64,000 nucleotides of DNA from Mantamonas sphyraenae STR306 (lineage: Eukaryota; Protista; CRuMs), in the NCBI GenBank assembly GCA_026936335.1, contig JAPMXV010000076.1, positions 109,531 through 173,530 on the forward strand, given 5' to 3'. A program made the translations under genes and the position numbers. Below, piece by piece: positions 17,876-64,000 of the stretch (the first letter of the stretch is position 1; every line of letters starts with the position of its first letter). The notes under the pieces are model-generated. The model saw nothing but the letters and a program-made list of their open reading frames with translations, was not told the origin of the DNA and searched no databases.

Positions 17876-18064
17876 GTGCCGTTTCGCCCTTGTTGTCAAA
17901 CTCGTCCACCTCAAATCCAAGCCCTCGACAAGTTGCCCAGAGTGCTGGTCCCTGGTCGAGCTTGACCAACTAACCCAAGATGTTGGTCAACTTTCCCACA
18001 TTTCTGGTCACAGAAGTCCCAATCAGGAGGCGAAGGCGAAGTGGGGACCCAACGCAAGTGCGCC

Positions 18065-22802: not shown

Positions 22803-24569
22803 ATGAGCTGGGGGGAGCCAAAGACAGTTGATTGGTTGGCCTTGCTGCAAAGCGGGGACCATGTACAGATTCGCAGTGCACTGGAGGCAGCGGGAGAGGT
22901 GGGCTGGGACCGGGACGCAGGGGAGGCGTAAAGGGCATCCACGGAGTGTGTGCTGACACGTTCTGCGCAGAATGTGAACATTCAAGGGCGAGGGCTAGGA
23001 TACAATGAGGTAGTAGCGCTTGCCGAGGCTTTGGGGGATGAGAGCACCTTGAAGACACTGCGGCTCCGCCACAGCAGCATCGGGGCAGAAGGAGCAGCGG
23101 CATTAGCGCAGATACTGTGTAAGAACAGTAGCTTGCAGATGGTGGACCTTGGTTCCAACAGCGTCGGAACAGAGGGGGCAGCAGCACTGGTGCAGGCACT
23201 GGGGAACAACAACAGCTTGCAGACATTGGACCTTGGTTCCAACAGCATCGGAGCAGAGGGGGCAGCAGCAGTTGCGCAGATGCTGGAACAGAACAGCAGC
23301 TTGCAGACACTGCGCCTCCGCCTCAACAGAATCGGGGCAGAGGGGGCAGCAGTACTCGCACAGGTGCTGGAAGAGAACAGCAGCTTGCAGACCCTGAAGC
23401 TCGTTTACAACAGCGTCGGGGCAGAAGGGGCAACAGCACTTGCGCAGGCACTGAGGAAGAACAGCGGGTTGCAGACGTTGGACCTACAGATGAACAACAT
23501 CGGGGCAGAGGGGGCAGCAGCACTTGCGCAGGCGTTGAGAAGCAACAACAGCTTGCAGACATTGGACCTCGGTTCCAACAGCATCGGAGCAGAGGGAGCA
23601 GCAGCACTGGTGCAGGCACTTGAGGAGAACAGCAGCTTGCAGACGCTGGACCTCCGCAGCAACAGAATCGGGGACGAAGGAGCAGCAGCACTGGCGCAGG
23701 TCCTGAGTCACACCGACTACCTTCGGACACTGGACCTCCGCAGCAACAGAATCGGGGCAGATGGAGCCGCAGCACTGGCCAAGTCACTTGAGGAGAATAC
23801 CAGTCTGTGGACACTGAGCCTTGGGACCAGCAGAATCGGGGACGACGGGGCAGTAGCACTGGCCAGGGCACTGGAGAAGAACAACAGCTTGCAGACACTG
23901 GACATCGCCTTCAACGGTATCAAAGTTAAAGGGGCAATAGCACTGTCGAAGGCCATGGAAGGCAACCGGTCCTGCTGGAAGATCCAGGGCGTTCGCAATG
24001 ACGATTTGGTGTCGCTGTTGGAGAGGAACAGGAAGCAGCATGTGGAGTTTGTGCAGTGTGGGGACGTGGAGACGATGGCTGCATTGAAGGAGTGGGGTGT
24101 GCCTGTGGACACGTTTGCAGGGGGTGGAGGGAAAGAGACTGCGCTGGAGCGAGCAGTGAAGCGTGGTGATGAGAGGATTGTGGAGATGTTGCGAGCGTGG
24201 GGTGCGACGCCGAGGATGGAAACGGGGACGATGGTGAGGAAGGCAGGGTGGAGGAAAGCGTGGCATTGGATTGGATGGGATGGACAGGTGGATGAGGCGA
24301 TGGAGGTGGCGTTGGTGATGAACGGGGAGGAGAGGGAGACGATGTTTGAGTGTGGGGGGATGGAGGAGTATGTGGAGGAGGGAGGGTGGGAAGGATGGGT
24401 GACACTGCCAGATGAGGTGATGGAGAGGGTGATTGGGTGGGTAGCGAAGGGTGCTGCACCGGCAATGGTCGCTGTGGGGAGGTCAGGGGAGACGAGAAAG
24501 CAAGAGAGAGATGAGCTGGAAGAGGTGGTGGAAGAAGTGGAGAAGAGACAACGTGTGGAAGAGGAGTGA
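22803..24569 (+). CDS. LRR-ANK-F-box-like protein 1 (11 RI-type LRRs); exons 22803-22898, 22971-24569
   Basis: Phase-0 intron GAG|GTGGGC...GCTGAC...GCAG|AAT. 28-aa LRRs (NSSLQTLDLxxNxIGAEGAAALAQAL), ankyrin TALERAVKRGDERIVEMLRAWGA, LPDEVMERVIGWV, tail KRQRVEEE. Confidence 0.9.
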
Positions 24570-25454
24570 GCAGAATCGCGTGTGGGGTGGATGGGGTGGA
24601 GGCGCAGGAGGGAAAGACGACCCTTGCGGCGCGGTGAGAGTCAGGCGAGGAAGCGAACGAGGAGGAAGCAGCTTGAGGAATCAGGAAGAGCAGGGAAAGA
24701 GGTGAATGGTGCACACGTGCGATGGCCTCGGGGACGAGATTGTCGATCGGTATCGGGAAGACATTGGAAGTGACGTGTAAGGGGAGTTGAGAGACGGGTC
24801 ACTGGCAGGGGCAATCGAATGCAGTCCATAGCTACCTGCAGGTTCTCGTGGGTGGAAATGTCCTTTCCATGTCCGATGGATGGGTTCAGGTGTGCTTCAA
24901 AGGCCAGTGGACGGGTCGATAGCGTGCGTTTGTCGAAGCAGTACAAACGCGACAGACGCAAGCCGTGGACCGACAAGGTGGGTTGATGACATAGTGGGTG
25001 TCTTGTTTGTTGGCAATAGTGGTGGGGGGGCTGCGTTCAACCTGCTTTCGTTTTGGCGGGAAGAAGGAGGCCAGTTGGCGCCAAGAACAAAGTGTCAAAC
25101 GAACGACGTGCAGCCTCTGCCCGCACGCACCACAGCGGGCGAACGCTGGGCGATCGATCCGTGTGTGGCTGTGCGATACGTGGGACGGTGCATCGCATCG
25201 CACAGTGAGACACCGGAGAGAGACGTGGGGAGGGAAGGAGCGTGTGGTGCTCGTGGTACCCGGCAAGCACAGCAGCACCATGCAACGCAGCTAACAACCA
25301 TCACGTTCCTACAGACTCTGAAGGTGGGTGGATTGTGTGGTCATGAGACCATGTGGGACGGACTGGTGGTGGAGGGGAAGAAAGAGGGTGGAGAGGAAGA
25401 GGCTGCGAGAAGTTGCTCCGTGTGCACGCGCTCACAAGGGGCAATGTAGACGAT

Positions 25455-27560
25455 ATGAGCTGGGGGGAGCCAAAGACGGTTGATTGGTTGGCCTTGCTGC
25501 AAAGCGGGGACCATGCACAGATTTGCAGGGCACTGGAGGCAGCGGGTGAGGTGGGCTGGGACCGGGACGCAGGGGAGGCGTGAGGGGCATCCACGGAGTG
25601 TGTGCTGACACGTTCTGCACAGGATGTGAACATTGATAGGCGGGAGCTAGGAGACAATGGGGCAGTAGCGCTTGCCGAGGCTTTGGGGCAGAAGAGCACC
25701 TTGAAGGTACTGCACCTCCGCCACAACAGCATCGGGGCAGAAGGAGCAGCGGCATTAGCGCAGGCACTGAGTGAGAACAGTAGCTTGCAGGCGTTGGACC
25801 TCAGTTCCAACAGCATCGGGGCAGAGGGGGCAGCAGCAGTTGCGCAAGTACTGAGTGAGAACTGCAGCTTGCAGACACTGAACCTCAGCCGCAACAGAAT
25901 CGGGTCAGAAGGAGCAGCGGTGTTTGCGCATGCACTGAGAAACAACAACAGCTTGCAGACACTGGACCTCGAACACAACAACATCGGGGCAGAAGGGGCA
26001 ACAGCACTGGGGCAGGCACTAAGGAACAACAACATCGTGCAGATATTAGACCTTGGTTCCAACACCATCGGAGCAGAGGGGGCAGCAGCACTCGCGCAGA
26101 TGCTGGAAGAGAACAGCAGGTTGCAGACCCTGAAGCTCGTTTACAACAGGATCGGGGACGAAGGGGCAACAACACTGGGGCAGGCGCTGAGGAACAACAA
26201 CAGCTTGCAGACATTGGACCTACAGATCAACAACATCGGAGCAGAGGGGGCAGCAGCACTTGCGCAGGCGTTGAGAAGCAACAACAGCTTGCAGACATTG
26301 GACCTCGGTTCCAACGGCATCCGAGCAGAGGGGGCAACAACTCTGGCCAAGGCACTTGAAGAGAACAGCAGCTTGCAGACCCTGTACCTCGATTACAGCA
26401 GGATCGGGGCAGAAGGGGCAACAACTCTGGCCAAGGCACTTGAGGAGAACACCAGCATGCGGACACTGAGCCTTTGGAATAACGAAATCGGGGATGAGGG
26501 GGCAGCAGCACTGGCGCAGGCCCTGAGTCACACCGGCTATCTTCGGACACTGGAACTCGGAGGCAACAGCATCGGGGCAGAAGGGGCAACAACTCTGGCC
26601 AAGGCACTTGAGGAGAACACCAGTCTGTGGACACTGGGCCTTTGGGACAACAAAATCGGGGACGAAGGGGCAGCAGCACTGGCGCAGGCCCTGAGTCACA
26701 CCGGCTATCTTCGGACACTGGAACTCGGAGGCAACAGCATCGGGGCAGATGGGGCAACAATTCTGGCCAAGTCACTTGAGGAGAACACCAGTCTGTGGAC
26801 ACTGAGCCTTTGGAATAACGAAATCGGGGACGAAGGGGCAGTGGCACTGGCCAGGGCACTGGGCGAGAACAACAGCTTGCAGACACTGAAAGTCACTCGC
26901 AACAGTATCAGTGCTGAAGGGGCAGCAGCATTGTCGAATGCCATGGAAGGCAATCGGGCGTGCTGGAAGATCGAAAGCGGGGTTGATAGTGTGGCGTTGA
27001 AGTCGCTGTTGGATCGGAACAGGAAGCAGCATGTGGAATTTGTGGAGTGTGGGGATGTGGAGAAGATGAGAGAGTTGAAGGAGTGGGGTGTGCCTGTGGA
27101 CACGTTTGCAGGGGATGAAGGGGAGATGACTGCGCTGGAGCGAGCAGTGAAGCGTGGGGATGAGAGGATTGTGGAGATGTTGCGAGCGTGGGGTGCGACG
27201 CCGAGGATGGAAACGGTGACGATGGTGAGGAAGGCAGGGTGGAGGAAAGCGTGGCATTGGATTGGATGGGATGGACAGGTGGATGAGGCGATGGAGGTGG
27301 CGTTGGTGATGAATGGGGAGGAGAGGGAGGCGATGTTTGAGTGTGGGGGGATGGAGGAGTATGTGGAGGCAGGAGGGTGGGAAGGATGGGTGACACTGCC
27401 GGATGAGGTGATGGAGAGGGTGATTGGGTGGGTAGCGAAGGGTGCTGCACCGGCAATGCTCGCTGCAGTGGGGTCAGACGAGACGAGGAAGCAAGAGAGA
27501 GATGAGCTGGAAGAGGTGGTGGAAGAAGTGGAGAAGAGACAACGTGTGGAAGAGGAGTGA
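25455..27560 (+). CDS. LRR-ANK-F-box-like protein 2 (15 LRRs); exons 25455-25550, 25623-27560
   Basis: Same architecture. Internal 168-bp two-LRR duplication (26525/26693). Confidence 0.9.
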
Positions 27561-28571: not shown

Positions 28572-30791
28572 ATGAGCTGGGGGGAGCCAAAGACAGTTGA
28601 TTGGTTGGCCTTGCTGCAAAGCGGTGACCATGTACAGATTCGCAGTGCACTGGAGGCAGCGGGTGAGGTGGGCTGGGACCGGGACGCAGGGGAGGCGTAA
28701 AGGGCATCCACGGAGTGTGTGCTGACACGTTCTGCGCAGAATGTGAACATTCAAGGGCGAGGGCTAGGAGACAATGAGGTAGTAGCGCTTACCGAGGCTT
28801 TGGGGGATGAGAGCACCTTGAAGACACTGCGCCTCCGCCACAACAGCATCGAGGCAGAAGGAGCAGCGGCATTAGCGCAGATACTGTGTAAGAACAGTAG
28901 CTTGCAGATGGTGGACCTTGGTTCCAACAGCGTCGGAACAGAGGGGGCAGCAGCACTGGTGCATGCACTGGGGAACAACAACAGCTTGCAGACATTGGAC
29001 CTTGGTTCCAACAGCATCGGAGCAGAGGGGGCAGCAGCAGTTGCGCAGATGCTGGAACAGAACAGCAGCTTGCAGACACTGCGCCTCCGCCTCAACAGAA
29101 TCGGGTCAGAAGGAGCAGCTGTGTTGGCGCATGCACTAAGGAACAACAGCAGCTTGCAGATATTGGGTCTCAGTTTGAACAGCATCGGAGCAGAAGGAGC
29201 GGCAGCACTGGGGCAGGAGGCACTGAGTAAGAGTAGCTGCTTGAACACACTTGACCTCAGCTCGAACAGCATCGGGGACGAAGGAGCAGCAGCACTGGCG
29301 CAGGCACTGAGTATGAGCAGCAGTGTACACACACTGGACCTCGACAACAACCGCATCGGGGCAGATGGAGCCGCAGCATTGGCGCAGACGCTGTGTAAGA
29401 ACAGTAGAATGCAGAAATTGGTCCTCCGCTGGAACAGCATCGGAGCAGAGGGGGCAACAGCACTGGGGCAGGCACTGAGGAACAACAACAGCTTGCAGAC
29501 ATTGGACCTTGGTTCCAACAGCATCGGAGCAGAGGGAGCAGCAGTACTCGCGCAGATGCTGGAAGAGAACAGCAGCTTGCAGACCCTGAAGCTCGCTTGC
29601 AACAGCGTCGGGTCAGAAGGAGCAGCAGCACTGGGGCAGGCACTGAGGAACAACAACTGCGGGTTGCAGACGTTGGACCTACAGATCAACAACCTCGGAG
29701 CAGAGGGGGCAGCAGCACTTGCGCAGGCGTTGAGAAGCAACAACAGCTTGCAGACATTGGACCTCGGTTCCAACAGCATCGGAGCAGAGGGAGCAGCAGT
29801 ACTCGCACAGATGCTGGAAGAGAACAGCGGCTTGCAGACCCTGAACCTCGCTCGCAACAGGATCGGGGCAGAAGGGGCAACAACTCTGGCCAAGGCACTT
29901 GAGGAGAACACCAGCCTGCGGACACTGAGCCTTTGGAATAACGAAATCGGGGACGAAGGGGCAGCAGCACTGGCGCAGGCCCTGAGTCACACCGGCTACC
30001 TTCGGACACTGAAACTCGGAGGCAACAGCATCGGGGCAGATGGAGCCGCAGCACTGGCCAGGGCACTTGAGGAGAACTCCAAGCTGCGGACACTGGGACT
30101 TTGCAACAACAAAATTGGGGACGAAGGGGCAGTGGCACTGGCCAGGGCACTGGAGAAGAACAACTGCTTGCAGAAACTGGAAGTCACTCGCGGTATCAAA
30201 GCTGAAGGGGCAACAGCACTGTCAAAGGCCATGGAAGGCAATCGGTCCTGCTGGGAGATCCAGGGAGTTCGCAATGACGCGTTGAAGTCGCTGTTGGAGA
30301 GAAACAGGAGGCAGCATGCGGCTTTTGTGGAGTGTGGGAATGTGGAGAAGATGAGAGAGTTGAGGGAGTGGGGTGTGCCTGTGGACACGTTTGCAGGGGA
30401 TGAAGGGGAGATGACTGCACTGGAGCGAGCAGTGGAGCGTGGGGATGAGGAGATTGTGGAGGTGTTGCGAGCGTGGGGAGCGCAGCCGAGGATTGAAACG
30501 GTGGCGATGGTGAGCGGAAAAGGGTGGAGGAAGGCGTGGCATTGGATTGGGTGGGGTGGACAGGTGGATGGGGCGATGGAGGTGGCGTTGGTGATGAATG
30601 GGGAGGAGAGGGAGGCGATGTTTGAGTGTGGAGGAATGGGGGAGTATGTGGAAGAGGGTGGGTGGGAAGGATGGGTGACACTTCCAGATGAGGTGATGGA
30701 GAGGATGATTGGGTGGGTGGGGAGGGGTGCTGCACCGGCAAGGGTCACTGTGGGGAAAGTCAGGGGATACGAGGAAGCAGGAAGGAGATGA
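28572..30791 (+). CDS. LRR-ANK-F-box-like protein 3 (17 LRRs; tail frameshifted); exons 28572-28667, 28740-30791
   Basis: Same architecture. The KRQRV tail is present but out of frame at 30790-30846. Confidence 0.88.
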
Positions 30792-31724: not shown

Positions 31725-33753
31725 ATGAGCTGGGGGGAGCCAAAGACGGTTGATTGGTTGGCCTTGCTGCAAAGCGGGGACCTTGTACAGATTCGCAGTG
31801 CACTAGAGGCAGCGGGAGAGGTGGGCTGGGACCGGGACGCGAGTGAGGCAAGAGGCGTGAAGGGCATCCACGGAGTGTGTGCTGACACGCTCTGCACAGG
31901 ATGTGAACATTGATAGGCGGGGGCTGGGAGACAATGAGGCACTAGCGCTTGCCGAGGCTTTGGGGCAGGAAAGCACCTTGAAGGTACTGCACCTTCGCGA
32001 CAACGGGATCGGGGCAGAAGGAGCAGCGGCATTAGCGCAGATGTTGTGTAAGAACAGTGGCTTGCAGATGTTGAACCTCCGCTGGAACAGCATCGGGGCA
32101 GAGGGGGCAGCCGCACTGGGGCAGGCACTGTGCAAGAACAGTTGCTTGCAGACACTGGACCTCGGTGCCAATGGCATCGGGGCAGAGGGAGCAGTAGCAT
32201 TGGCGCAGGCACTGAGTGAGAACGGTGGCTTGCAGACACTGGAACTCGGTGCCAATGGCATCGGGGCAGATGGGGCAGCAGCGCTGGGGCAGGCACTGTG
32301 CAAGAACAACAGCTTGCAGACAGTGGACCTCCGCTGGAACAGCATCGGGGCAGAGGGGACGACAGCACTGGGACAGGCACTGGGAAACAACTGCACTTTG
32401 CAGGAACTGGACCTCCGCTGGAACAGCATCGGTGACGAAGGAGCAGCAGCGCTCGGGCAGATACTGGAAGAGAACAGTGGCTTGCAAAGCCTGACCCTCA
32501 TTCACAACAGTATCGGGGCAGAGGGGGCAACAGCACTGGCCAAGGCGATGAAGCAAAACAACAGTTTGCATACGATGGACCTAAGGATAAACAGCATCGG
32601 AGCAGAGGGGGCAGCAGCAGTGGCGCAGGCACTGTGTGAGAACAGCAGCTTGCAGATACTGCACCTCGGCGAGAACAGGATCGGGAGCAAAGGAGCAGAA
32701 ACACTGGCGCAGGCAATGTGTGAGAGCAGCAGCTTGCAGATTTTGAACCTCGAGAACAATGGCACCGGTAACGATGGAGCAGTAGCACTGGCGCAGGCAT
32801 TGTGTGAGAACAGTAGCTTGCGAACACTGGGTCTCAGCCGCAACAACATCGGTGACGAAGGAGCAGCAGCACTGGCGCAGGCCCTGAGTCATACCGGCAA
32901 CTTGCGGGCACTGGACCTCGGAAACAACAGCATCGGGGCAGATGGGGCCGCAGCACTGGCGCAGGCACTTAAGGAAAACACAAGCCTGCGGACACTGAGC
33001 CTTTGGAACAACAAATTCGTGAACACAGGGGCAGTAGCACTGGCCAAGGCACTGGAGAAGAACAACAGCTTGCAGAAACTGAACGTTGCCCGCAACGGAA
33101 TCGGAGCTGAAGGGGAAGCAGCACTGTCGAGGGCCATGGAAGGCAATCGTTCGTGCTGGAAAATCGAAAGCGGGGTTGATAGTGGGGCGTTGAAGTCACT
33201 GTTGGATCGGAACAGGAAGCAGCATGTGGAATTTGTGGAGTGTGGGGATGTGGAGAAGATGGCTGCATTGAAGGAGTGGGGTGTGCCTGTGGACACGTTT
33301 GCAGGGGATGGAGTTGAGGAAACTGCGCTGGAGCGAGCGGTGAGGCGTGGGGATGAGAGGATTGTGGAGGTGTTGCGAGCGTGGGGAGCGCAGCCGAGGA
33401 TGGAAACGGTGGGGATGGTGAGGAAGGAAGGGTGGATGAAGGCGTGGCATTGGATTGGGTGGAGGGGTCAGGTGGATGAGGCGGTGGAGATGGCGTTGGT
33501 GATGAATGGGGAGGAGAGGGAGGCGATGTTTGAGTGTGGAGGGATGGAGGAGTATGTGGGGGAGACAGGGTGGGAAGGGTGGGTGACACTGCCGGATGAG
33601 GTGATGGAGAGGGTGATTGGGTGGGTGGGGAGGGGTGCTGCACCGGCAAGGGACACTGTAAGGAGGTCAGGGGAGACGAGGAAGCGAGAGAGAGATGAGT
33701 TGGAAGAGGAGGTGGAAGAAGTGGAGAAGAGACAACGTGTGGAGGAGGAGTGA
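31725..33753 (+). CDS. LRR-ANK-F-box-like protein 4 (14 LRRs); exons 31725-31820, 31900-33753
   Basis: Same architecture and intron position. Confidence 0.9.
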
Positions 33754-36517: not shown

Positions 36518-37866
36518 ATGAGCGCGCTGAATATGAACGATTGGTTGGAACTGCTGCAGAGTGGGGATCACGAACGGATTTGCAGTGCACTGGAGGCGGA
36601 GGGAGAGGTGGGTTGGGACTGGAACGCGCAGGGACGTGTTTCATGTCAAGAAGTGGAAGAAGGGCAACAATGGAGTATGCGCTGACAAGCGAAGCAAAGC
36701 GGTTGTACGTTTACCCTCCCATTCTAGGTGACGATGAGGCAGCAGCGCTGGCGCAAGCACTTTGTGAGAACAGCAGCTTGCAGACGCTGAACGTCTGCGA
36801 GAACAGTATCGGGGCAGAGGGAGCAACAGCGCTGGCGCATGCACTGTGTGAGAACACGAGCTTGCAGACACTTGACCTTGGTGGCAACAGGATAGGGGCA
36901 GAAGGAGCAAAAGCACTGGCGCAAGCACTGCGCGAGAACAGCAGCTTGCAGAGACTGGACCTCGGCGAGAACAACATCGGGGCAGCAGGAGCAAGAGCAA
37001 TGGCGCAGGCATTGTGTGAGAACCGCGGCTTGCAGACACTGGACCTCTGCCACAACAGCATCGGGGCAGAAGGCGCAGCAGCCTTGGGGCAGGCATTGTG
37101 CGAGAACAGCACCTTGCAGAGACTGTACCTCGGCAGCAACAGCATTGGGGACCAGGGAGCAGCAGCACTGGGGCAAGGACTGAGTAAGAACAGCAGCTTG
37201 CAGAGGCTGAACCTCTGGAACAGTAACATTGGGGACAAAGGAGCAGCAGCCCTGGCGCAGGCACTGAGAGAGAACAGCAACTTGCAGTCTTTGTACCTCC
37301 GCAGAAACAGCATCGGGGAAGAAGGTGCAGCAGCACTGACCAAGGCAATGGAAGTCAATCGGTCGTGCTGGAACCTCCCGGGCGATTTCGATGACGCTTT
37401 GGAGTCGTTTTTACAGAGGAACAGGAAGCGTCATGCGGAGTTTGTGGAGTGTGGGGATGTGGAGAAGATGGCTGCATTGAGGGAGTGGGGTGTGCCTGTG
37501 GACACATCTGCAGAGGGGCGAGAGTATGAGAGGTCTACGGCGCTGGAGCGAGCTGTGAAGCGGGGGGACGAGAGGATTGTGGAGGCTTTGCGAACATGGG
37601 GTGCGACGCCGGGGATGGAAATGGTGGAGATGGTGAGGAAGGAAGGGTGGAGGAAGGCGTGGCATTGGATTGGATGGGATGGACAGGTGGATGAGGCGAT
37701 GGAGGTGGCGTTGGTGATGAATGGAGAGGAGAGGGAGACGATGTTTGAGTGTGGTGGGATGGAGGAGTATGTGGGGGAGGGAGGGTGGGAAGGATGGGTG
37801 ACACTGCCGGATGAGGTGATGGAGAGGGTGATTGAGTGGGTTGGGAGGGGTGCTGCACCCAGGTGA
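36518..37866 (+). CDS. LRR-ANK-F-box-like protein 5 (7 LRRs, no acidic tail); exons 36518-36607, 36700-37866
   Basis: First exon MSALNMNDWLELLQSGDHERICSALEAEGE. AAG acceptor in frame. Confidence 0.85.
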
Positions 37867-39062
37867 GACGAGAAGCGTTCGGGGTGTCTGTGGGACGAGG
37901 GATGTGTGGGTGAAGGGGGCTGCGGAGTCGGGAGGTTGGCGCAGGAGGGAGTGTGATGGGTGGTGGGAAGCAGGGTGGATTGCTGGTCGAGGAATGGTGT
38001 GTCCACTTGTGTGGGACCATTTGGGAAGGGGTTGATCCTGGCGTGGACTTGTGGGCCATCACGGGGAGTGGAGACAAGGTGGAGGAGACGAGTTCCCGGG
38101 AACGCCGGTGGCAGGCCAACGCCGTCGTCGCCCAGGAGGCATTGGGGTCAAGGATGGGCACAGGATTGGGATGTTGAAGGCAAGTTGGACACCATCGGGG
38201 AAGGGAGGATGGTAAGGGAGGAGGTGTTTGGTCGACGCGGGCAGTCTGTGTTTGCCAAGGTGGGCAAAGGGGTATTTGGAGGACACCAAGGTGATTTTCG
38301 GGGGATCATAGTCCCGGTGTCGACAGTGGGAATGCACAAGGCTGATGCGGTGTGCTCTCGTGCGATAACTCGATGGTCGGGAAGGAGCAACCGGAGCTGG
38401 TTGTGTGGTTGAGTGGGAGTTGGAGTTGAGCGCAGGGACGGAAGGGGAGATCGACATGGGAGGACGCTGTGGAGAGGAACGAAGGCAGCGGCTGGGATGC
38501 ACACTTTGAGACTGGCAGAGGGGCTCTGTGGTTGCGAGAGAGTGGGCATGCACAGGACAGGCAGGCAAGGAGGAGGAGGACCTGTGTATGGGAAGAGTGT
38601 GGTGGAGGACGGATCCGCAGGGCAGGTGGTCGTTGTGGAGAGATACCATCAATACATTGCGTGTGTGACTACTGTGTGTCGGGTTGTGCGTCCAGTTGGG
38701 CGAGGGAGACGACGGGTGTGTGGATGGCCACATGGAAGGATATCGCATCGAACTGGTGCATGGTGGGGTTGGTTGCCTGCTAGGCGGGTGGTCACTTCAG
38801 GGGCTGGGTGGGACGCACGCAAACCATGCACAGTTGGGGAGAGAGGGACCTGCAGAGGCATGGGCAGAGAGTCGGCTTGCGCAACAGCATGCAACGCATC
38901 TTGGAACAGTCACATTGTAAAGGAAATCTCAGGGTAGGTGGGTTGGATGGATGGACAATGCGCGGGATGAACTGTGGCCGTGGAGAGGGGAGAGGAGGGG
39001 AAGGCGGCAGCCACAGCTGCAGGCGCGCTCACACTCACACTCACAAAGGCAGGGCAGACACA

Positions 39063-40740
39063 ATGAGCTCAATGGATGCGGATGACTGGTGTGCCTTGCT
39101 GCGTGATGGGGATCATGCACGGGTGTGTGCTGCACTGGAGGCAGAGGAAAAGGTGGGCTGGGACGGGACGAACGCAGGTTGACGCTTGGTACGTCAAGAA
39201 GCGATGGTGGCAAAGGGTACCAACGGGGTGAGTGCTTACACGCGGGGCACAGGAGTTGGTTATTTATGGCAAGATGCTGGGAGGCCAAGAGGCAGCAACA
39301 CTGGCCATGGCGCTGGGGAAGAACAAGAGCCTGCAGACTCTGGTCCTCAGCCGCAACAGTATTGGGGCCAAAGGAGCAGCAGCACTCGCGGAGGCACTGA
39401 GCGAGAACGACAGCTTGCAGACCCTTGTCTTGGGCAACAACATGATCGGGGCAGAAGGAGCAGCGGTAATGGCGCAGACGCTGTGTGTGAACAGAGGCCT
39501 TCTGGTGCTGAACGTCAGCCAGAACAGAATGCAGGACAAGGGAGCAATGGCATTGGCCAAGGCGTTGGGTGAGAACAGTAGCTTGCAGAAGCTGAATCTC
39601 AGCTTCAACAGCATCGGGGACAAAGGAGCAATAGCACTGGGGCAGGCACTGAGCGAGAACAGCAACTTGCAAACTCTGGAGCTCGGGAACAACGGTATTG
39701 GGGCAGAAGGAGCAGCAGCATTTGCGCAGGGACTGAAGGTGAACAGCTGCTTACAGAAGTTGGACCTCGAGAGGAACAACATTGGGGCAGAAGGAACAGC
39801 AACGCTGGCGCAGGCTCTGAAGGAAAACAGCAACGTGCAGGAACTGAACCTCAGCAGGAACAGCCTCGGGGCAGAAGGAGCAGCAGCAATGGCACAGGCA
39901 TTGGGTGAGAACAGTACCTTGCAGAATCTGGACCTCAGCGGCAATGTAATCGATGTGGAAGGAGCAGAAGCGCTGGCGCAGGCACTGAGGAAGAACAGCA
40001 GCTTGCGGACTCTGGACCTCCAGTCCAACCGGATCGGGGCAGAAGGAGCAGCAGCATTGGCCAAGGCATTGGGTGAGAACAACAGCCTGCAGACACTGGA
40101 CCTCCACATCAACCAGGTCGGGGCAGAAGGATCAGCCGCCCTGGTCAAGGCCTTGCGTGAGAACAGCAGCTTGCAGACACTGTTCCTCGGCTGGAACAGC
40201 ATCGAGGACGAAGAAGCAGCAGCGCTGTCAAGGGCCATGGAAGTCAATCGGTCGTGCTGGAACATCAAAAGGATTGACAATGACGCGTTGAAGTCGCTGT
40301 TGAATCGGAACAGGAAACAGCATGTGGAGTTTGCGGAGTGTGGGGATGTGGAGACGATGAGAGAGTTGAGGGAGTGGGGTGTGCCTGTGGATACGTTTGC
40401 AGGGGGTGGGGGCGGTGAAACTGCGCTGCAGAGAGCCGTGAAGCGAGGGGATGAACGGATTGTGGAGGTGTTGCGGGCATGGGGTGCGAAGCCGAGGATT
40501 GAAACGGTGGCGATGGTGAGGAAGGAAGGGTGGAGGAAGGCGTGGCATTGGATTGGGTGGGCTGGACGGGTGGATGAGGCGATGGAGGTGGCGTTGGTGA
40601 TGAACGGGGAGGAGAGGGAGGCGATGTTTGCGTGTGGAGGGATGGAGGAGTATGTGGATGAGGGAGGGTGGGGAGGGTGGGTGACATTGCCAGATGAGGT
40701 GATGGAGAGGGTGGTTGAGTGGTTGGGGAGGGGAAGGTGA
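39063..40740 (+). CDS. LRR-ANK-F-box-like protein 6 (11 LRRs, no tail); exons 39063-39152, 39253-40740
   Basis: First exon MSSMDADDWCALLRDGDHARVCAALEAEEK. CAG acceptor in frame. Confidence 0.88.
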
Positions 40741-42880: not shown

Positions 42881-44413
42881 ATGTTTACCGATTGGATTGA
42901 TCTGCTGAAGAACGGGGACCATGCGCAGATCTGTAGTGCACTGGAGGCACGGGGACAGGTAGGCTGGACCGGAACGCAAAGAGAGAGCGGGAGGGACGTG
43001 TGGCTCGTGGGTGAAGGGCAACAGTGGAGTGTGTGCTGACATGGCATACATGGGGTACAAAAGCTGCGTATTAGTCACCAGCAGTTAGAAGACAATGTGG
43101 CAGTAGCGCTGGCCAAGGCGCTGGGGAAGAACAGCAGCCTACGGTCGCTTCGCCTCGAGAACAACAACATCGGGGCAGAAGGAGCACCAGCACTGGGGCA
43201 GGCACTGAGTGAAAACAGCAGCTTGCAGACACTGTACCTCATGAACAACGGCATCGGGGACGAGGGAGCAGCAGCACTGGCGCAGGCACTGAGAGTCAAC
43301 AACACCTTGCAAACTTTGGATCTCAGCATCAACGGGATCGAGGCAGAAGGAGCTGCAGCACTGGCGCAGGCACTGAGTGAGAACAGTAGATTGAAGGAAC
43401 TGGTGCTTGGTCACAACAGCATCGGTGACAAAGGTGTATCAGCTCTGGCACAGGCACTGAGAGAGAACAGTAGCCTGCAGAGGCTGAACCTTTGCGACAA
43501 CAGGATCGAGGACGAAGGAGCAGCAGCACTGGGGGAGGCACTGAGCGCAAACAGCAGCTTGCAGACACTGGAACTCAGAAGCAACAGCATCGGGGCAGAA
43601 GGAGCAGCAGCACTGGCGCAGGGACTGAAGGGGAACCGCAGCTTGCAGTTACTTGACCTCGGACAGAACGACGTTGGAGCACAAGGAGCAGCGGCCATGG
43701 CACACGTTCTGGGTGCAAACGGCAGCTTGCAGACTCTGGACCTCTGGAACAACAACATTGGGGATCGGGGAGCTGAAGCACTGGCTAAGGGTCTAAATGA
43801 TAACAGCAGCTTGCAGATGCTGGACCTCGATGACAACAGCATATGGGAAGAAGGGGCCGCTGCTCTGGCCATGGCAATGGAAAGAAATCGGGCTTGCTGG
43901 AAAATCAAAGGCGTCAACGCTGAAGCGCTGCAGCGGTTGTTCAAGAGGAACCAGAAGCAACATGAGGTATTTGTGGAGTGTGGAGATGTGGAGAAGATGA
44001 GAGAGTTGAGGGAGTGGGGTGTACCCGTGAACACGTTTGCGGGGAAAAGAGGGACGAAGACTGCGCTGCAGCGAGCAGTGAAGGGTGGGGACGAGAGGAT
44101 TGTGGAGGTGTTGCGAGCGTGGGGCGCAAAGCCGAGGATGGAAACGGTGGAAATGGTGAGGGAGGAAGGGTGGAGGAAGGCGTGGCATTGGATTGGATGG
44201 GTTGGACAGGTGGATGAGGCAATGGAAGTGGCGTTGGTGATGAACGGGGAGGAGAGGGAGGCAATGTTTGAGTGTGGAGGGATGGAGGAGTATGTGGAGG
44301 TGGGAGGGTGGGAAGGGTGGGTGACACTGCCAGATGAGGTGATGGAGAGGGTGATTGGGTGGGTGGGGAGGGGTGCTGCACCCAGGCGAGGCGAGGAAGC
44401 AAGAGGGAGATGA
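42881..44413 (+). CDS. LRR-ANK-F-box-like protein 7 (9 LRRs; tail frameshifted); exons 42881-42958, 43064-44413
   Basis: First exon MFTDWIDLLKNGDHAQICSALEARGQ. AAG acceptor in frame. Confidence 0.85.
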
Positions 44414-47101: not shown

Positions 47102-48972
47102 ATGAACGCGCTGGAAATGGATGAATGGGTCGAACTGCAGCAGACTAGGGATCAAGAACGGATTTGCAGTGCGCTGGAGGCAATGGGAGAGGTGGGTTGG
47201 AACTGGGTCGCAGAGGGATGTTTGTCGCGTCAGGAAACCAGTGGAGGGGATCAGTGCATAGTTTGCTGACGCGTGTGGCACAGAACACAAGCTTGCAGAC
47301 GCTGGAACTCAGCAGCAGCAACATCAGGGACAATGGTGCAGCAGCACTGGCGCAGGCTCTGAGTTTGAACAGCAGCTTGCAGACACTGAATCTCTACAAC
47401 AATTGGATCGAAGCAGAAGGCGCAGCAGCACTGGCGCGGGCACTGAGTGCGAACAGCAGCTTGCAGACGCTGGACCTCAGAAACAACAGGATCAGGGACA
47501 ATGGTGCAGCAGCACTGGCGCGGGCACTGGGTGCGAACAGCAGCTTGCAGACACTGGACCTCGAAAACAACAGCATCGGGGACGAAGGAGCAGCAGCACT
47601 GGGGCAGGGAATGAGTGAGAACAGCAGCGTGCAGACGCTACTCCTCGGGAACAACCTCATCGGGGCAGAAGGCGCAGCAGCACTGGCGCAGGGGTTGAGT
47701 ACGAATAGCAGCTTGCAGACACTAACCTTCGGCTTCAACAAGATCAGGGATGAAGGAGCAGCAGCCCTGGCGCAGGCACTGAGTGAGAACACCAGCGTAC
47801 GGACTCTGGACCTCAGGCTCAACAGCATCGGGGCAGATGGAGCAGCTGCACTAGGGCAGGCGCTGAGTGAGAACAGCAGCTTGCAGACACTGACCCTCTT
47901 AGGCAACATCATCGAGGCCGAAGGTGCAACGGCACTGGCCAAGGCACTTTGTGTGAACAGCAGCTTGCAAAAACTGGACCTCGCAGACAACAGCATCGGG
48001 GCAGAGGGAGCAGCAGCACTGGCACAGGCACTGAGTGAGAACAACAGCTTGAAGACACTGAACCTCAGCCGCAACGGTATGGGGGGAAAAGGTGCAGCAG
48101 CACTGGCGCAGGCACTGCTTGAGAACAGCAGCTTGCAGACACTGGACCTCAGGTGCAACAGGGTCGGCGACGAAGGAGCAACAGCACTGGCGCAGGCACT
48201 GAGTGAGAGCGGCAGCTTGCAGACGCTGACGCTCGACTTCAACAACATCGGGGACAATGGTGCAGCAGCACTGGCGCGGGCACTGAATGGGAACTGTAGC
48301 CTGCAGTCACTGGTCCTCGGAAACAACAGCATCGGGGACGAAGGAGCAGCAGCCCTGGCCATGGCAATGGAAGGCAATCTTTCCTGCTGGAACATCGAAG
48401 GCGTCCGCAATGACATTTTGGAGTCGCTTTTGAAGAGGAACAGGAAGCAACATGTGGAGTTTGTGGAGTGTGGGGATGTGGAGAAAATGGCTGCGTTGAG
48501 GGAGTGGGGTGTGCCTGTGGACACGTTTGCAGGGGATGAAGGTGAGGAGACGGCGCTGGAGAGAGCAGTGAAGCGAGGGGATGAGAGGATTGTGGAGGTG
48601 TTGCGGGCGTGGGGAGCGACACCGAGGATGGAGACAGTGGCGATGGTGAGGAAGGCAGGATGGAGGAAGGCGTGGCATTGGATTGGATGGGGTGGACAGG
48701 TGGAGGAGGCGATGGAGGTGGCATTGGTGATGAATGGGGAGGAGAGGGAGGCGATGTTTGCGTGTGGAGGGATGGAGGAGTATTTGGAGGAGAGAGGGTG
48801 GGAAGGGTGGGTGACACTGCCAGATGAGGTGATGGAGAGGGTGATTGGGTGGGTGGGGAGGGGTGCTGCACCGGCAAGGGTCGCTGTGGGGAGGTCAGGG
48901 GAGACGAGGAAGCGAGAGAGGGATGAGGAGGAAGGAGAGGTGGAAAAGAGGCAACGTGTGGAGGAGGAGTGA
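47102..48972 (+). CDS. LRR-ANK-F-box-like protein 8 (13 LRRs); exons 47102-47191, 47284-48972
   Basis: Same intron. Lacks the divergent N-cap repeat seen in the others. KRQRVEEE tail. Confidence 0.88.
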
Positions 48973-50857
48973 ACAGTGGGCGCTGCCTGGGAACGAACTG
49001 GTGGATCAGTCTGCACTCTGTACACAACAGCAACGTGGATGGATGTCTGTAGGACCTTGTCGCGCCACACCGAGGTCTGTGGTCAACCACGAGGAGGCCA
49101 CAGTGATGGCTGTGGGACGGAGTGGGCGTCAAGAGAGTGCCTGTGTGGGTGAAAGGCGGTATGGGGTCGAGATGTTGGTTCAGGAGGCAGTTTGAAGCAT
49201 GGTGTGCTGGTTGTGTCGACCGTGGCAAAGTTGATGGATGGAGAAGCAGGGTGGATTGCTGGTCGATGAATGGTGTGTGCACTTTGTGGGACCATGTGGT
49301 GGGGAGGGGGTGATGCTGGCGTGGACTTGTGGGCCATTACGGGGAGTGGAAGCACGGAGGAGGAAAGGAGTTCCCGGGAACCCAAGTGGCAAGCCGACGC
49401 AGTCGTCTGGGGTCAAGGAAGGGCACACAAGTGGCATGTTGAAGGCAAAGTGAACACCGGCAGGGAAGGATGGGGTGAGGAAGGAAGCAAGGAGGTGGGG
49501 AGTTTGGTTGACGGGGCCAGTCTGTGTTTGCCAAGGTCGGCAAGGGGTGTTTGGGGAACTCAGGGAGCGAGACGACGGTGGGCTTGCTCACAGGTGGAGT
49601 GGTTTGGTAGGAAGGACCGTGGGTGACGGTGTGCACGTCACGTGGGGCGACTGTTGGTCGATCTGGTGCATGTCATGACCCGCTGTGTGAGTGTGTTTGT
49701 GGCGCCAGACGCGAACCTGTTCTGGCCCATCATCGCATCACAGCGGGGTGGTCGACACCATCACACACTGTCCATGGAGAGATCCTCGGGTCATGGTGTG
49801 CTTTGACGGGGATGTGCATCGTGGTGGGCAGGACCACAGCTCCTCCTCCTGTGCCATGGTTGCATCAGATGGAATAGAGAGAAGGAGAGGAGGAGAGTAG
49901 AAAGGAGTAAGCAGGGGCTGCAAAGGGGGAATGGTGACATTAAACTTGGTGTGGGTGATGAGGGGCGCATCCAGTGGTGGGTGGTTGTCGCAGTGCGCGG
50001 TATGTGTGGGTGGATGTGTGGGTGTGACTGCAGTCGATGTCGTGGCTGGAGTGTCCTGGGCCTGTTGGATGGACGGGGGGTGGGGAGGCATTCAGGTGGG
50101 CAGCAGCCGAGTGTGGTGGGAGAAAGGGCGCTTGTCAAAGCAGGACAAACAAGTGACTGAAGGAGATGTCCAGGCAAGGTTGGTTGATGACATAGTGGGT
50201 GTCTCGGGTTGACAATGCCGGTTGGTGGGTGCGCTGGGGCTGCGTGCAACCGGCTTTTCCGTTTGGGCGGGGAGAAGGAGGCTGGTTGGCGCCAGCAACA
50301 AAGTGGCAAAAAGGCACGTCGTGCTGCCGCCCCACGCACCACAGACGGCCAACACTTGGCGACCATTCCAGAGTCTGACTGTCCGATGCATGGGACGACG
50401 CATCGGGCAGTCGGCACAACAACGGGACGCCGGGGGCTGGGTGGGGAAGGGACTTTGGGCCCGCGGGGTGCAAGGGAGTCTTGCCAACCGCAGCAGCAGC
50501 ATGCAACGCATCTCACACAACCCGCATATTCTCACAGATTCATACTCCGGCGACGGTAAGTGACTGGGTGGATGGAGAACGTGTGTGTTGGGCTGGTGGT
50601 TGAGAGGGAGGAGGAAGGCGGGTGCAGGGGGTGCACGTCAAGCGCAGCAGCACTTGCAACGCCGTCTAACAACCCGTCCGTCCTCACAGAATGGGAATCA
50701 GAACCAGAATCAGAACCAGAAGGCAAGTAAAGTGGATGGATGGAGAACGTGCGGGTTGGGCTGGTGGTGGAGAGGGAGGGGGAAGGTGGACGCAGAAGTT
50801 GGAGAGAGGGAAGGGTGGTGAACACACACGCTCACATCTGGCAAATCAGACGATTTT

Positions 50858-52376
50858 ATGCCACCGAGGAAGGTTGATTGGATGGAACTGCTGGAGGGCG
50901 GGGATCATGAACGGATTTGCATCGCACTGGAGGCAAAGGGAAAGGTGGGTTGGGACCGGACTCAGAGAGGGGCGTCGTGCACGTCAAGAAGTGGATGAAG
51001 GGCAACAATGGAGTGCGCTGACACGTGGAGCACAGTACTTGGATCTTACTAACGAGGAACTAGGTGACAAAGAGGCAGTAGCGCTGGCCAAGGCGCTGGG
51101 GAAGAACTGCAGCTTGCAGAAACTGAACCTGCAGATCAACAGCATCGGGTACAAAGGAGCAACAGCAGTGGCGCAGGCACTGAGTGAGAACAACAGCTTG
51201 CAGACTCTGATCCTACGAAGCAATGAGATCGGGGATGAAGGAGCAGCAGCAATGGCGCAGGCTCTGAGTAAGAACAGCAGCTTGCAGGAACTGAACCTCA
51301 GCGACAACAGCATCGAGGACAAGGGCGCAGCAGCACTGGCGCAGGGACTGAGTGTGAACAGCAGCTTGCAGGAACTGGACCTCGGCACCAATAGCGCCGG
51401 GGACAAGGGCGCAGCAGCAATGGCGCAGGCACTGAGTAAGAACAGCAGCTTGCAGGAACTGGACCTCAGCGCCAATAGCGTCGGGGAAAAGGGCGCAGCA
51501 GCAATGGGGCAGGCTCTGAGTAAGAACAGCAGCTTGCAGACACTGTACCTCGGCACCAACAGCATCGGGGACGATGGAGCAGCATCACTGGCGCAGGCTC
51601 TGAGCACGAACAGGAGCTTGCGGACGCTGGACCTCTACTGGAACAGGATCGATGACAAAGGTGCAGCAGCACTGGCGCAGGCACTGAATGAGAACAACAG
51701 CTTGCAGACACTGAACCTCAGCTGGAACAGGATCGGCAACAAAGGAGCAGCAGCACTGACAAAGGCGATGAAAGGCAATCGGTCGTGCTGGAACATCGAG
51801 GATGTCCAGGATGGAGCTTTGCTGTCGCTTTTGGAGAGGAACAAGAAGCAGCATGTGGAGTTTGTGGAGTGTGGGGATGTGAAGCAGATGAGAAAGTTGA
51901 GGGAGTGGGGTGTGCCTGTGGACACGTATGCAGGGGATGAAGGGCGGAAGACTGCTCTGGAGAGGGCAGTGAAGGGAAGGGATCACGAGATAGTGGCAGT
52001 GTTGCGGGCATGGGGTGCAAAGCCGAGGATGGAAACGGTGGAGATGGTGAGGGAGGCAGGGTGGAGGAAGGCGTGGCATTGGATTGGATGGGGTGCGGAG
52101 GTGGATGAGGCGGTAGAGGTAGCGTTGGTGATGAACGGGGAGGAGAGGGAAGCGATGTTTGAGTGTGGAGGGATGGAGGAGTATGTGGAGGAGAGAGGGT
52201 GGGAAGGATGGGTGACATTGCCGGATGAGGTGATGGAGAGGGTGATTGGGTGGGTGGGGAGGGGTGCTGCACCGGCAAGGGTCCCCTGGTGGCTGAGAGC
52301 ACGGGAGACGAAGAAGCGAGAGAGGGATGAGGAGGAAGAAGAGGTGGAAAAGAGGCAACGTGTGGAGGAGGAGTGA
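50858..52376 (+). CDS. LRR-ANK-F-box-like protein 9 (8 LRRs); exons 50858-50944, 51036-52376
   Basis: First exon MPPRKVDWMELLEGGDHERICIALEAKGK. KRQRVEEE tail. Confidence 0.88.
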
Positions 52377-63866: not shown

Positions 63867-64000
63867 TTAGGAATAGGACTAGGGTTAGGGTTAGGGTTAG
63901 GGTTAGGGTTAGGGTTAGGGTTAGGGTTAGGGTTAGGGTTAGGGTTAGGGTTAGGGTTAGGGTTAGGGTTAGGGTTAGGGTTAGGGTTAGGGTTAGGGTT
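63867..64000 (+). repeat. Telomere (TTAGGG)n with three in-register degenerate hexamers at the junction
   Basis: TTAGGA ATAGGA CTAGGG, then 19 perfect TTAGGG from 63885 to the window end. Confidence 0.99.

Follow-up and report, generated by a model that had tools for sequence, protein, structure and literature searches.

The described systems closest to the gene array considered here are the NOD2/NLRC3-type NLRs of animals, including the 'NLRC3-like' expansions of corals and other organisms. The array genes share with them the 28-residue LRR_6 class of LRRs, a presumably intracellular location and a multiplicity of copies. Unlike the NLRs, they lack NACHT or any other nucleotide-binding domain, and their LRRs are N-terminal and followed by ankyrin repeats and an orphan Trp-rich block that is seen in none of the relatives. 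Another point of comparison is offered by the ankyrin-PRANC proteins of poxviruses, Orientia and Wolbachia, which likewise form multi-copy families near genome ends and carry a C-terminal LPxE(I/V)xxx(I/V) helix after their ankyrins. The array differs from these in giving no PRANC or F-box profile match, in having only 1–2 ankyrins with a 60-residue Trp-rich block before the motif, in varying in its LRRs rather than in ankyrins, and in belonging to the cellular genes of a free-living protist. FBXL proteins, such as Skp2, combine an N-terminal three-helix F-box of ~40–50 residues with cysteine-containing LRRs of 26 residues. The array similarly couples an LRR solenoid to a short, putatively helical motif that could in principle bind an adaptor, but this motif is C-terminal and comprises one helix, and the LRRs are of the 28-residue ribonuclease-inhibitor (RI) type. 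The VLRs of jawless fish are secreted or membrane-anchored and are somatically assembled from cassettes; they resemble the array in concave-face diversity, variable LRR number, an invariant C-terminal part and the cassette-like exchange of sequence, whereas the array consists of nine complete germline copies, in whose translations no signal peptide is seen by eye.

Tandem clusters of LRR genes that are specific to individual species have also been described in Tetrahymena, in subtelomeric and pericentromeric regions, where they evolve rapidly and unequal crossing-over has been proposed as the source of their length variation (PMC6564038). Here too young tandem LRR genes lie at a chromosome end of a free-living protist, but the Tetrahymena genes are made up of 90-bp repeat exons with phase-2 introns (PMC6564038), whereas the 84-nt units of the array all reside in one exon. 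A further difference is that every member of the array bears the same orphan C-terminal module. Given such precedents for subtelomeric LRR expansion, the array is interesting but not exceptional.

Mantamonads branch near the base of Amorphea and are free-living bacterivores; to our knowledge, almost nothing is known of how such organisms recognize microbes or viruses. The compact array provides a tractable case for the generation of LRR repertoires outside animals and plants, and for the nature of a putative output module that operates without NACHT. If its constant tail does bind a cullin adaptor, the one-helix F-box, so far poxviral, would extend to a cellular family; if it does not, a new domain would be defined. 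The explanation that we favor, and regard as probable though far from assured, is a lineage-specific, subtelomeric, recombination-diversified repertoire of intracellular binding proteins that share a presumed output module without recognizable relatives.

The gene array

The window, a 64-kb stretch of one Mantamonas sphyraenae genome, contains nine tandem paralogs on the + strand from 22803 (the ATG of g1 exon 1) to 52376 (the final stop-codon base of g9), as placed by ORF coordinates and tblastn. Queries with the constant domain and with the LRR region each recovered nine copies in the window, with no additional fragments of the family, which bears out the nine paralogs of the first-pass annotation. 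The features are as follows:

g1, 22803..24569, + strand: exon 1 22803-22898, intron 22899-22970, exon 2 22971-24569; 11 LRR units; constant module from 23952; LPDEVMER motif from 24405; charged tail intact
g2, 25455..27560, + strand: exon 1 25455-25550, exon 2 25623-27560; 15 LRR units; constant module from 26940; LP motif from 27396
g3, 28572..30791, + strand: exon 1 28572-28667, exon 2 28740-30791; 17 LRR units; constant module from 30228; LP motif from 30681; tail frameshifted relative to the other copies
g4, 31725..33753, + strand: exon 1 31725-31820, exon 2 31900-33753; 14 LRR units; constant module from 33133; LP motif from 33589
g5, 36518..37866, + strand: exon 1 36518-36607, exon 2 36700-37866; 7 LRR units; constant module from 37345; LP motif from 37804; stop 7 residues past GWV
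g6, 39063..40740, + strand: exon 1 39063-39152, exon 2 39253-40740; 11 LRR units; constant module from 40234; LP motif from 40687; stop 4 residues past the motif helix
g7, 42881..44413, + strand: exon 1 42881-42958, exon 2 43064-44413; 9 LRR units; constant module from 43874; LP motif from 44327; tail short and decayed
g8, 47102..48972, + strand: exon 1 47102-47191, exon 2 47284-48972; 13 LRR units; constant module from 48364; LP motif from 48817; charged tail intact
g9, 50858..52376, + strand: exon 1 50858-50944, exon 2 51036-52376; 8 LRR units; constant module from 51765; LP motif from 52218; charged tail intact
Trp-rich block (example from g1), 24231..24455, + strand: ~75 residues, closing with the LPDEVMERVIGWV helix
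Telomere, 63880..64000, + strand: (TTAGGG)n, ~20 copies, up to the window end

All nine genes are predicted, from sequence signals and conservation alone, to have two exons with intact frames and splice signals: a conserved exon 1 of 26–32 residues is separated from exon 2 by a phase-0 GT..AG intron of 72–105 nt. The spliced models served for frame checks and for the placement of LRR units; searches and folding used the exons separately. The string LTRSAQ, a candidate for a conserved N-terminal peptide, was rejected, as it corresponds to the intron's 3' end, with its CTGAC branch site and CAG acceptor. No hidden N-terminal domain or F-box was detected by Pfam in the upstream ORFs, the gap ORFs or exon 1 alone, and the window gave no matches in Rfam and tRNA scans.

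Relationships and variation of the LRRs

The LRR regions are built of tandem repeats with a period of 84 nt (TRF), and in the corresponding 28-residue register g1 to g9 contain 11, 15, 17, 14, 7, 11, 9, 13 and 8 units, reproducing the earlier counts in every gene. Unit length, profile and fold, with a consensus drawn from 104 units, identify them as ribonuclease-inhibitor-type LRRs. Pfam LRR_6 is matched by 8–15 stretches with E-values of 1e-45 to 1e-77, and the AF2 model of the LRR part displays a strand-helix pattern at a pLDDT of ~90. The best fold matches in the PDB (Foldseek) are NOD2 (39–40% identity), axonemal LRR proteins, tropomodulin, ribonuclease inhibitor and NLRP1, with tropomodulin/leiomodin and CARMIL also among the matches. 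The closest sequence relatives are NACHT+LRR_6 'NLRC3-like' proteins of 45–56% identity, which align only over the LRR 60–67% of the query; RanGAP appears as the source label of some sequence relatives. The LRRs of the array are of the NOD2/NLRC3 type, without NACHT: Pfam recovered neither NACHT nor NB-ARC in the four full ORFs scanned, and the upstream and gap ORFs were likewise devoid of Pfam matches.

Variation within the repeat is concentrated at positions 5, 7, 8 and 10, which fall in the strand/loop segment LxxLxLxxNx and have entropies of 2.6–3.7 bits; framework positions are below 1 bit. The dN/dS ratio is 1.41 (bootstrap 1.06–1.84) at these four codons, compared with 0.43 at the remaining 21, by a simple Nei-Gojobori count over non-independent nearest-neighbor unit pairs with near-saturated codons, which is not a formal site test. 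A ratio above 1 at these positions is suggestive of diversifying selection.

The genes are recombination mosaics, with unit duplications inside individual genes and block swaps between neighbors. The nearest paralog of g1 shifts along its length: g4 is closest upstream (0.97), g3 in the stretch made up of exon 1 and the leading LRRs (0.98), and g2 within the Trp-rich block (0.98). In g3, the first three units match g1 at 96–100% identity, and those at aa 341–425 match g2 at 94–98%. Modules of two units are duplicated within g2, g3 and g9, that of g2 lying at aa 311/339 and 367/395 with 90–96% nt identity. The initial description of variable LRRs joined to a constant module is strengthened by the entropy focus, the dN/dS of the variable codons and this mosaicism.

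The constant module and the alternative readings of the array

The constant C-terminus (~170 residues) aligns over 167–170 columns in the nine copies with a mean column identity of 86%, and is made up of an LRR cap, two ankyrin repeats, one solid and the other weak, and the Trp-rich block. Its earlier characterization as almost invariant is accurate for the final 55 columns (94% mean column identity) but not for the first 95 (dN 0.125). The ankyrin repeat noticed at first reading is authentic: TALERAVKRGDERIVE.LRAWGA (module residues 62–85) scores 22–32 bits with a unit HMM trained on 1932 natural repeats, and the matches in the PDB and the best 150 of 1194 matches among 1.84 billion proteins are to ankyrins only, with DARPin/ankyrin PDB chains covering profile positions ~28–93. 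Pfam Ank_4 barely exceeds its cut-off in g2 (23.3 vs 22.7 bits) and falls below it in the other copies; the second ankyrin is a weak half-repeat (shuffle p 0.018). No segment of the repeat unit is as conserved as the Trp-rich block (89–98% nt identity in 36/36 pairs), identity elsewhere being 0.6–0.7 in the LRRs and 0.4–0.75 just downstream of the block. Third positions vary in 28 of its 75 codons, while GWRKAWHWIGW, ALVMNGEERE and WVTLPDEVMER show no amino-acid differences; the block is conserved as amino acids despite synonymous changes. Intact frames and splice signals, the framework dN/dS of 0.43 and a dN/dS of ~0.3 in the constant module together indicate that the genes are constrained. 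Synonymous divergence declines toward the 3' end (dS 0.66, 0.36, 0.22), so that part of the constancy may be due to gene conversion and not to selection at the protein level.

A profile search of 1.84 billion representative proteins with the constant module returned, in the best 150 of 1194 matches, multi-ankyrin proteins aligned at positions ~28–93 only, none of them with an E-value below 1e-30; weak matches to the Trp-rich half may lie further down the ranking. No relative emerged when residues 335–500 were searched by word seeding against 5.8 billion clusters, and of the pattern matches in metagenome contigs (two scans) and viral contigs (one scan), none was confirmed by tblastn as a relative. 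Among PDB sequences the whole module retrieved ankyrins only and its last 55 columns nothing. The Trp-rich block is thus without recognizable relatives in the databases searched, and the constant half being matchless in representative proteins, clusters, metagenome and viral contigs and the PDB, the initial impression that the architecture belongs to no named family holds. In the structural check suggested for the constant domain, AF2 gave a low-confidence model of the module alone (pLDDT 44), for which Foldseek found no match below E 0.4, and in a model with four LRRs the pLDDT was ~90 for the LRRs, 46–60 for the ankyrins and 31–44 for the Trp-rich block, whose range over both models is 31–45.

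The terminal motif had been interpreted as a PRANC-type F-box helix ending the protein. WVTLPDEVMER is indeed present and invariant in 9/9 copies, but the protein does not terminate there: a charged tail of 35–40 residues extends beyond it in 5/9 (g1, g2, g4, g8 and g9), that of g3 is frameshifted, and g5–g7 are truncated. That the LPDEVMERVIGWV helix serves as a minimal F-box-like (PRANC-like) element at the C-terminus, recruiting Skp1-Cul1, with the array encoding variable-LRR substrate receptors, strikes us as distinctly unlikely, even though its 13-residue hydrophobic pattern fits F-box helix 1, its conservation is complete in the paralogs, and the loose LP motif is uncommon, its frequency across 272 unrelated proteins being 6 per 100,000 residues and that of a stricter form 0.4 per 100,000. 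NLRC3-type LRRs also occur with ubiquitin-ligase modules elsewhere (F-box-like and LRR_6 in P0254; LRR_6, kinase and U-box in P0196), and poxviral F-boxes are C-terminal, follow ankyrins and are truncated, CP77 being reported to bind Skp1 with an F-box cut down to helix 1 (PMC4353913). Set against this, the motif was found post hoc, and an F-box/PRANC profile match to the LPDEVMER segment, which had been named beforehand, beside Skp1 binding, as a test, was not obtained: Pfam F-box, F-box-like, PRANC and SOCS-box all failed to match the isolated C-terminus at E ≤ 10, the F-box families PF00646 and PF12937 were without matches on the whole proteins at E ≤ 1, and hhalign against a natural F-box-like+LRR_6 protein gave a probability of 0.2%. 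The PDB includes solved F-box proteins, such as Skp2, and the motif-block profile matched none of its chain sequences at E ≤ 10. Rather than the ~40–50 residues of a three-helix F-box starting from L-P, just 13–16 residues past LP are conserved, beyond which nt identity falls to 0.41–0.75; given this and the frameshifted or truncated tails of 4/9 copies, F-box helices 2 and 3 cannot be present. PRANC proteins have 4–10 N-terminal ankyrin repeats as their substrate-binding part; the array proteins have one strong repeat and one weak half-repeat, and the PRANC profile (PF09372) is unmatched; of the PRANC features, only the placement of the motif, C-terminal within the conserved region, is shared. 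The window contains no Skp1 gene. With no profile match and with conservation stopping after LP, what is left of the SCF-receptor idea, unsupported by these tests, is the one-helix motif. A SOCS_box of the ASB type, which follows ankyrins, was not listed at E ≤ 10 either, and TLPDEVMERV would conform to the loose BC-box spacing only with Val accepted in place of the Cys.

The Trp-rich block could instead represent two further, very degenerate ankyrins, with LPDEVMERVIGWV as the outer helix of the capping repeat of a four-repeat domain. Alignments by hhalign to natural ankyrin arrays do reach columns 122–142 with a probability of 72–81% and set GW..AWHW on the G.T.LH position, and DEVMERVIGWVG is similar by eye to DERIVEVLRAWGA of the true repeat; yet the ankyrin unit HMM leaves residues 94–129 unmatched and gives -1.8 bits for 126–167 and -2.1 for 148–172, scores not above those of shuffled sequences (p 0.39 and 0.58), where the true repeat attains 32.7, and AF2 assigns, at low confidence, strands and not a pair of helices to WRKAWHWIGW and GWEGWVTL, all of which makes this reading improbable. 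A somewhat more credible, if still minor, contender is an ordinary young tandem family without any repertoire role, such as structural or regulatory LRR proteins (axonemal, tropomodulin-like or RanGAP-like), whose variation would stem from repeat instability and relaxed constraint at a chromosome end. The fold matches to axonemal LRR proteins, tropomodulin/leiomodin and CARMIL, the RanGAP labels of some relatives and the decayed tails of g3 and g5–g7 would suit such a family, and subtelomeres in general gather fast-evolving duplicates (PMC6564038). Relaxed constraint is, however, at odds with the intact frames and splice signals of 9/9 copies and with the dN/dS values of the framework codons and the constant module, and the variation is uneven, centering on four strand/loop positions where dN exceeds dS.

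A candidate intracellular binding repertoire

Under the favored explanation of a recombination-diversified binding repertoire, the NOD2/NLRC3-type solenoid, variable in length, would be the variable recognition surface, and the concave face of the LRRs would bind diverse ligands. The constant module would presumably link all members to one shared partner or output, with a transmitting or localizing role. The proteins are probably cytosolic or nuclear, the translations revealing by eye nothing like a signal peptide or membrane segment. The immune or effector role that was originally proposed for the array is something we only infer. It is doubtful, but conceivable, that the array represents a NACHT-less NLR-type sensor repertoire at CRuMs chromosome ends, with the orphan tail as a new signaling or ligase-recruiting module, possibly a one-helix Skp1/Elongin-type adaptor site; this would constitute an innate-immunity-like system independent of the animal and plant NLRs.

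The chromosomal location may favor recombination that generates new variants. The G-rich strand of the terminal (TTAGGG)n tract reads outward, and the tract begins 11.5 kb past the end of the array, confirming the subtelomeric position that had been suggested. The M. sphyraenae genome has a GC content of 59.19% and contig ends of TTAGGG (PMC10492846). A neighboring ORF of HECT-SPRY type shows 56% identity to a Mantamonas plastica protein.

Organization of the array and of its genes

The telomere lies within the window, where (TTAGGG)n fills the sequence from 63880 to its final base, G-rich strand outward, marking a chromosome end. TTAGGG repeats were reported at the ends of most contigs of the published M. 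sphyraenae genome, which has a GC content of 59.19% (PMC10492846); the GC content along the window is 0.55-0.62. The nine paralogs (g1 to g9) are all encoded on the + strand and oriented toward the telomere, with the last one 11.5 kb from it, and the start (22803) and end (52376) of the array in the first-pass annotation coincide with the ATG of g1 and the stop of g9. Searches with tblastn recovered exactly nine copies each of the constant C-terminal domain, the LRR region and exon 1, and no stray fragments of any of these in the window.

The mechanical ORFs of the paralogs lack an ATG and share a conserved 'LTRSAQ' start because each gene consists of two exons. In all nine genes the predicted exon 1 encodes 26-32 aa that conform to DWxxLLxxGDHxxIcxALEAxGe, an intron of 72-105 nt (phase 0, GT..AG) comes next, and a single large exon 2 carries the whole LRR set and the constant part. 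Such two-exon models, derived from sequence alone and used to check frames and to place the LRR units, are open from ATG to stop in 9/9 cases. The apparent peptide 'LTRSAQ' is really the CTGAC branch site and CAG acceptor of the intron, read in frame. Every copy also displays a conserved element, GCAGCAGCA-T/G-GCAACGCATCT, about 140-240 nt 5' of the ATG (e.g. 22625-22690, 36340-36420, 46950-47010 and 50660-50720). Behind it come a branch-site/CAG acceptor, 9-33 nt of 6-nt repeats and a GT(A/G)GGT donor, and a second acceptor, CTCAC...CAG, is situated 0-8 nt 5' of the ATG. Together, these elements resemble a 5' UTR that is spliced and includes a micro-exon.

Features around and within the array. 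Long ORFs are of 690-1065 aa and gave no match in Pfam at E<=0.001; antisense ORFs are of 400-560 aa; none of the tandem repeats is related to the LRRs.
3009-5327, - strand: long ORF
15200-15245: tandem repeat, 9-nt unit, 5 copies
15545-17875, + strand: long ORF
18061-18397: tandem repeat, 28-nt unit, 11.9 copies, 92% matches
18940-21006, + strand: long ORF
32969-34177, - strand: antisense ORF across LRR genes
33977-36517: long gap preceding g5
35090-35423: copy of the ~330-415-nt gap element
37871-38286: copy of the ~330-415-nt gap element
39264-40898, - strand: antisense ORF across LRR genes
43411-44634, - strand: antisense ORF across LRR genes
44692-47101: long gap preceding g8
45617-46031: copy of the ~330-415-nt gap element
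47394-49070, - strand: antisense ORF across LRR genes
49232-49554: copy of the ~330-415-nt gap element
49243-50583: long gap preceding g9
55322-55794: tandem repeat, 172-nt unit, 2.8 copies
57414-59774, + strand: intact ORF of 786 aa with SPRY and HECT domains (ubiquitin ligase), between array and telomere
60015-63212, - strand: long ORF

The duplicated unit also takes in intergenic DNA. The long gaps preceding g5, g8 and g9 are mutually homologous (72-74% over 1.3-2.6 kb), contain 1.5-2.5 kb of extra conserved DNA and enclose no ORF with a Pfam match. The element found in four inter-gene gaps, in which no Pfam-recognizable ORF was detected, may have been left over from the duplicated unit, or it may be a small mobile element; its copies at 37871-38286 and 45617-46031 are 93.5% identical to each other and 79-83% identical to the other two. 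The antisense ORFs mirror the repeats and are rich in Ser, Pro and Ala; most likely they arise as a by-product of coding sequence that is GC-rich and repetitive, and are not genes. The best relative of the HECT-SPRY ORF is a protein from the EukProt transcriptome of Mantamonas plastica (56% identity). Over 1-20 kb the GC skew is negative for the most part, with one positive 2-kb bin; from 22 kb on it is strongly positive, and AT skew is positive too. The purine-rich strand coincides with the one that encodes the array. This pattern suggests a switch in the direction of transcription near 21-22 kb.

Diversification of the LRR arrays

An 84-nt period was detected in every gene by TRF, and Pfam LRR_6 matches have E-values of 1e-45 to 1e-77. 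In a 28-aa register g1 to g9 contain 11, 15, 17, 14, 7, 11, 9, 13 and 8 units, identical in 9/9 genes to the counts first proposed. Exon 2 of g8 matches NACHT+LRR_6 proteins, such as coral 'NLRC3-like' proteins, at 45-56% identity, with the similarity spanning 60-67% of the query, i.e. the LRR region and nothing beyond it. When the last four LRRs were modelled with AF2 together with the constant part, the LRRs reached a pLDDT of ~90, and the best fold matches of the model in the PDB were NOD2 (39-40% identity), axonemal LRR proteins, tropomodulin/leiomodin, ribonuclease inhibitor, NLRP1 and CARMIL. The LRRs are of the NOD/NLRC3 (RI-type) class; neither in the genes nor in the upstream ORFs did Pfam searches identify a NACHT or any further domain.

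Across 104 units in register, entropy is below 1 bit at the framework positions L1, L4, L6, N9, I11, G15, A16, L19, L23 and N26, and reaches 2.6-3.7 bits at positions 5, 7, 8 and 10 and 2.2-2.8 bits at positions 24, 25 and 27. In RI-type LRRs, the beta-strand and the loop after it carry the x positions of LxxLxLxxNx, which are situated on the concave ligand-binding face. Nei-Gojobori comparison of 83 nearest-neighbour unit pairs yielded dN/dS of 1.41 (bootstrap 95% 1.06-1.84) for codons 5, 7, 8 and 10, 1.03 for codons 24, 25 and 27, and 0.43 for the remaining 21 codons. Since the pairs are non-independent and the hot codons near saturation, we take the value above 1 as suggestive, and not as proof, of diversifying selection at codons 5, 7, 8 and 10.

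Recombination changes both the length and the content of the LRR arrays. Duplications inside genes include a 2-unit module in g2 (aa 311/339 and 367/395, 90-96% nt identity) and single units in g3 (284/369, 96%) and g9 (140/168, 93%). Units 1-3 of g3 are 96-100% identical to g1 and its units at aa 341-425 are 94-98% identical to g2, and the nearest paralog of g1 changes along the whole repeat unit from g4 upstream (0.97), through g3 over exon 1 and the first LRRs (0.98), to g2 in the Trp-rich block of the constant part (0.98).

The constant C-terminal module

The constant part comprises 167-170 aligned columns with a mean identity of 86% and can be divided into four pieces: (i) columns 1-32, capping the last LRR; (ii) two ankyrin elements, the first a weak half-repeat (about residues 34-49, shuffle p 0.018) and the second a solid repeat (residues 62-85) that reaches 22-32 bits with a unit HMM made from 1932 natural repeats, which were taken from the matches of a profile search of 1.84 billion proteins; (iii) a ~75-aa Trp-rich block, GWRKAWHWIGW ... 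ALVMNGEERE ... GWEGWVTLPDEVMERVIGWV; and (iv) a charged tail, RKRERDE...EVEKRQRVEEE, which is intact in g1, g2, g4, g8 and g9 but carries a frameshift in g3 and has been truncated or has decayed in g5-g7. The Trp-rich block is the most conserved piece of the whole repeat unit, with nucleotide identity of 0.89-0.98 in 36/36 pairs, compared with 0.6-0.7 in the LRRs and 0.41-0.75 directly 3' of the block. It has synonymous differences at 28/75 third positions, long invariant amino-acid stretches and a dN/dS of 0.29. Toward the 3' end dS drops from 0.66 through 0.36 to 0.22, and therefore gene conversion probably adds to purifying selection.

The window's own proteins are absent from the protein collections, as neither the 5.8-billion-cluster search nor the search with exon 2 of g8 gave a self-match. 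Profile searches of the PDB and of the 1.84 billion proteins retrieved ankyrin proteins only, at profile positions ~28-93 (in the latter, among the best 150 of 1194 matches). Relatives of the Trp-rich block were absent from a 5.8-billion-cluster search, from metagenome and viral contigs and from PDB sequences, and the best 150 of 1194 matches in the representative library were likewise ankyrin only. Less probably, the constant part might be a degenerate ankyrin domain of four repeats, and hhalign against two natural ankyrin arrays does extend to columns 122-142 with a probability of 72-81%; against this, the Trp-rich block scores no better than shuffles with the ankyrin unit HMM. AF2 could not model the block (pLDDT 31-45, no usable model), making a fold search of the constant-only model meaningless.

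The first-pass annotation had seen in the end of this module an F-box-like, PRANC-type element that could recruit Skp1-Cul1. The hydrophobic residues of LPDEVMERVIGWV indeed agree with the pattern of F-box helix 1, and there is no variation in WVTLPDEVMER; the relaxed form of this motif is uncommon, at about 6 occurrences per 100,000 residues of unrelated proteins, though the fit, having been found post hoc, is weak evidence. Profile comparisons did not bear the proposal out: Pfam listed no F-box, F-box-like, PRANC or SOCS-box for the isolated C-terminus even at E<=10, the profile of the Trp-rich block matched no PDB chain at E<=10, and hhalign against the F-box-like region of P0254, a natural F-box+LRR_6 protein, returned a probability of 0.2%. 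Furthermore, conservation stops 13-16 residues past the LP, and therefore F-box helices 2 and 3 cannot exist. Nevertheless, the C-terminal F-boxes of poxviral ankyrin proteins are reported in a review to be without helix 3 and to make most contacts through helix 1 and the preceding loop, and CP77 is reported there to need little more than helix 1 for binding Skp1 (PMC4353913). We accordingly assign a low probability to the terminal motif being a Skp1-binding F-box-like element, and likewise to the family being Skp1-Cul1 substrate receptors. RI-type LRRs are coupled to ubiquitin-ligase modules elsewhere in nature, as exemplified by NLRC3-type arrays of other organisms that are fused to a protein kinase and U-box (P0196) or follow an N-terminal F-box-like domain (P0254).

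A candidate repertoire of intracellular binding proteins

Within the one 64-kb window of one genome that forms our evidence base, the best-supported reading is that of a germline repertoire of intracellular binding proteins. Units have been duplicated, segments have been exchanged between genes, and both LRR number and LRR residues have changed. Under this reading, unit duplication and deletion, along with exchange between neighbouring genes, would keep altering LRR number and concave-face residues, with the subtelomeric position likely favouring such recombination. The LRRs would bind ligands, and the C-terminal module, kept constant by selection and probably also by gene conversion, would connect every variant to the same partner. 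Less probably, the family is devoid of repertoire function and evolves under relaxed constraint. Intact reading frames in all nine genes, a dN/dS of 0.3-0.43 at positions other than the hot ones and the focusing of the variability argue against simple decay.

In terms of known systems, the family lacks NACHT and is hence not an NLR, and its members are neither FBXL nor PRANC proteins. They start at the N-terminus with a short conserved exon and continue with RI-type LRRs, 1-2 ankyrin repeats and the orphan Trp-rich block, an architecture absent from every collection searched. Species-specific tandem LRR clusters at chromosome ends have been described in Tetrahymena (PMC6564038). We place the family among the diversifying LRR families, a known kind, and the Trp-rich block is probably a new domain.
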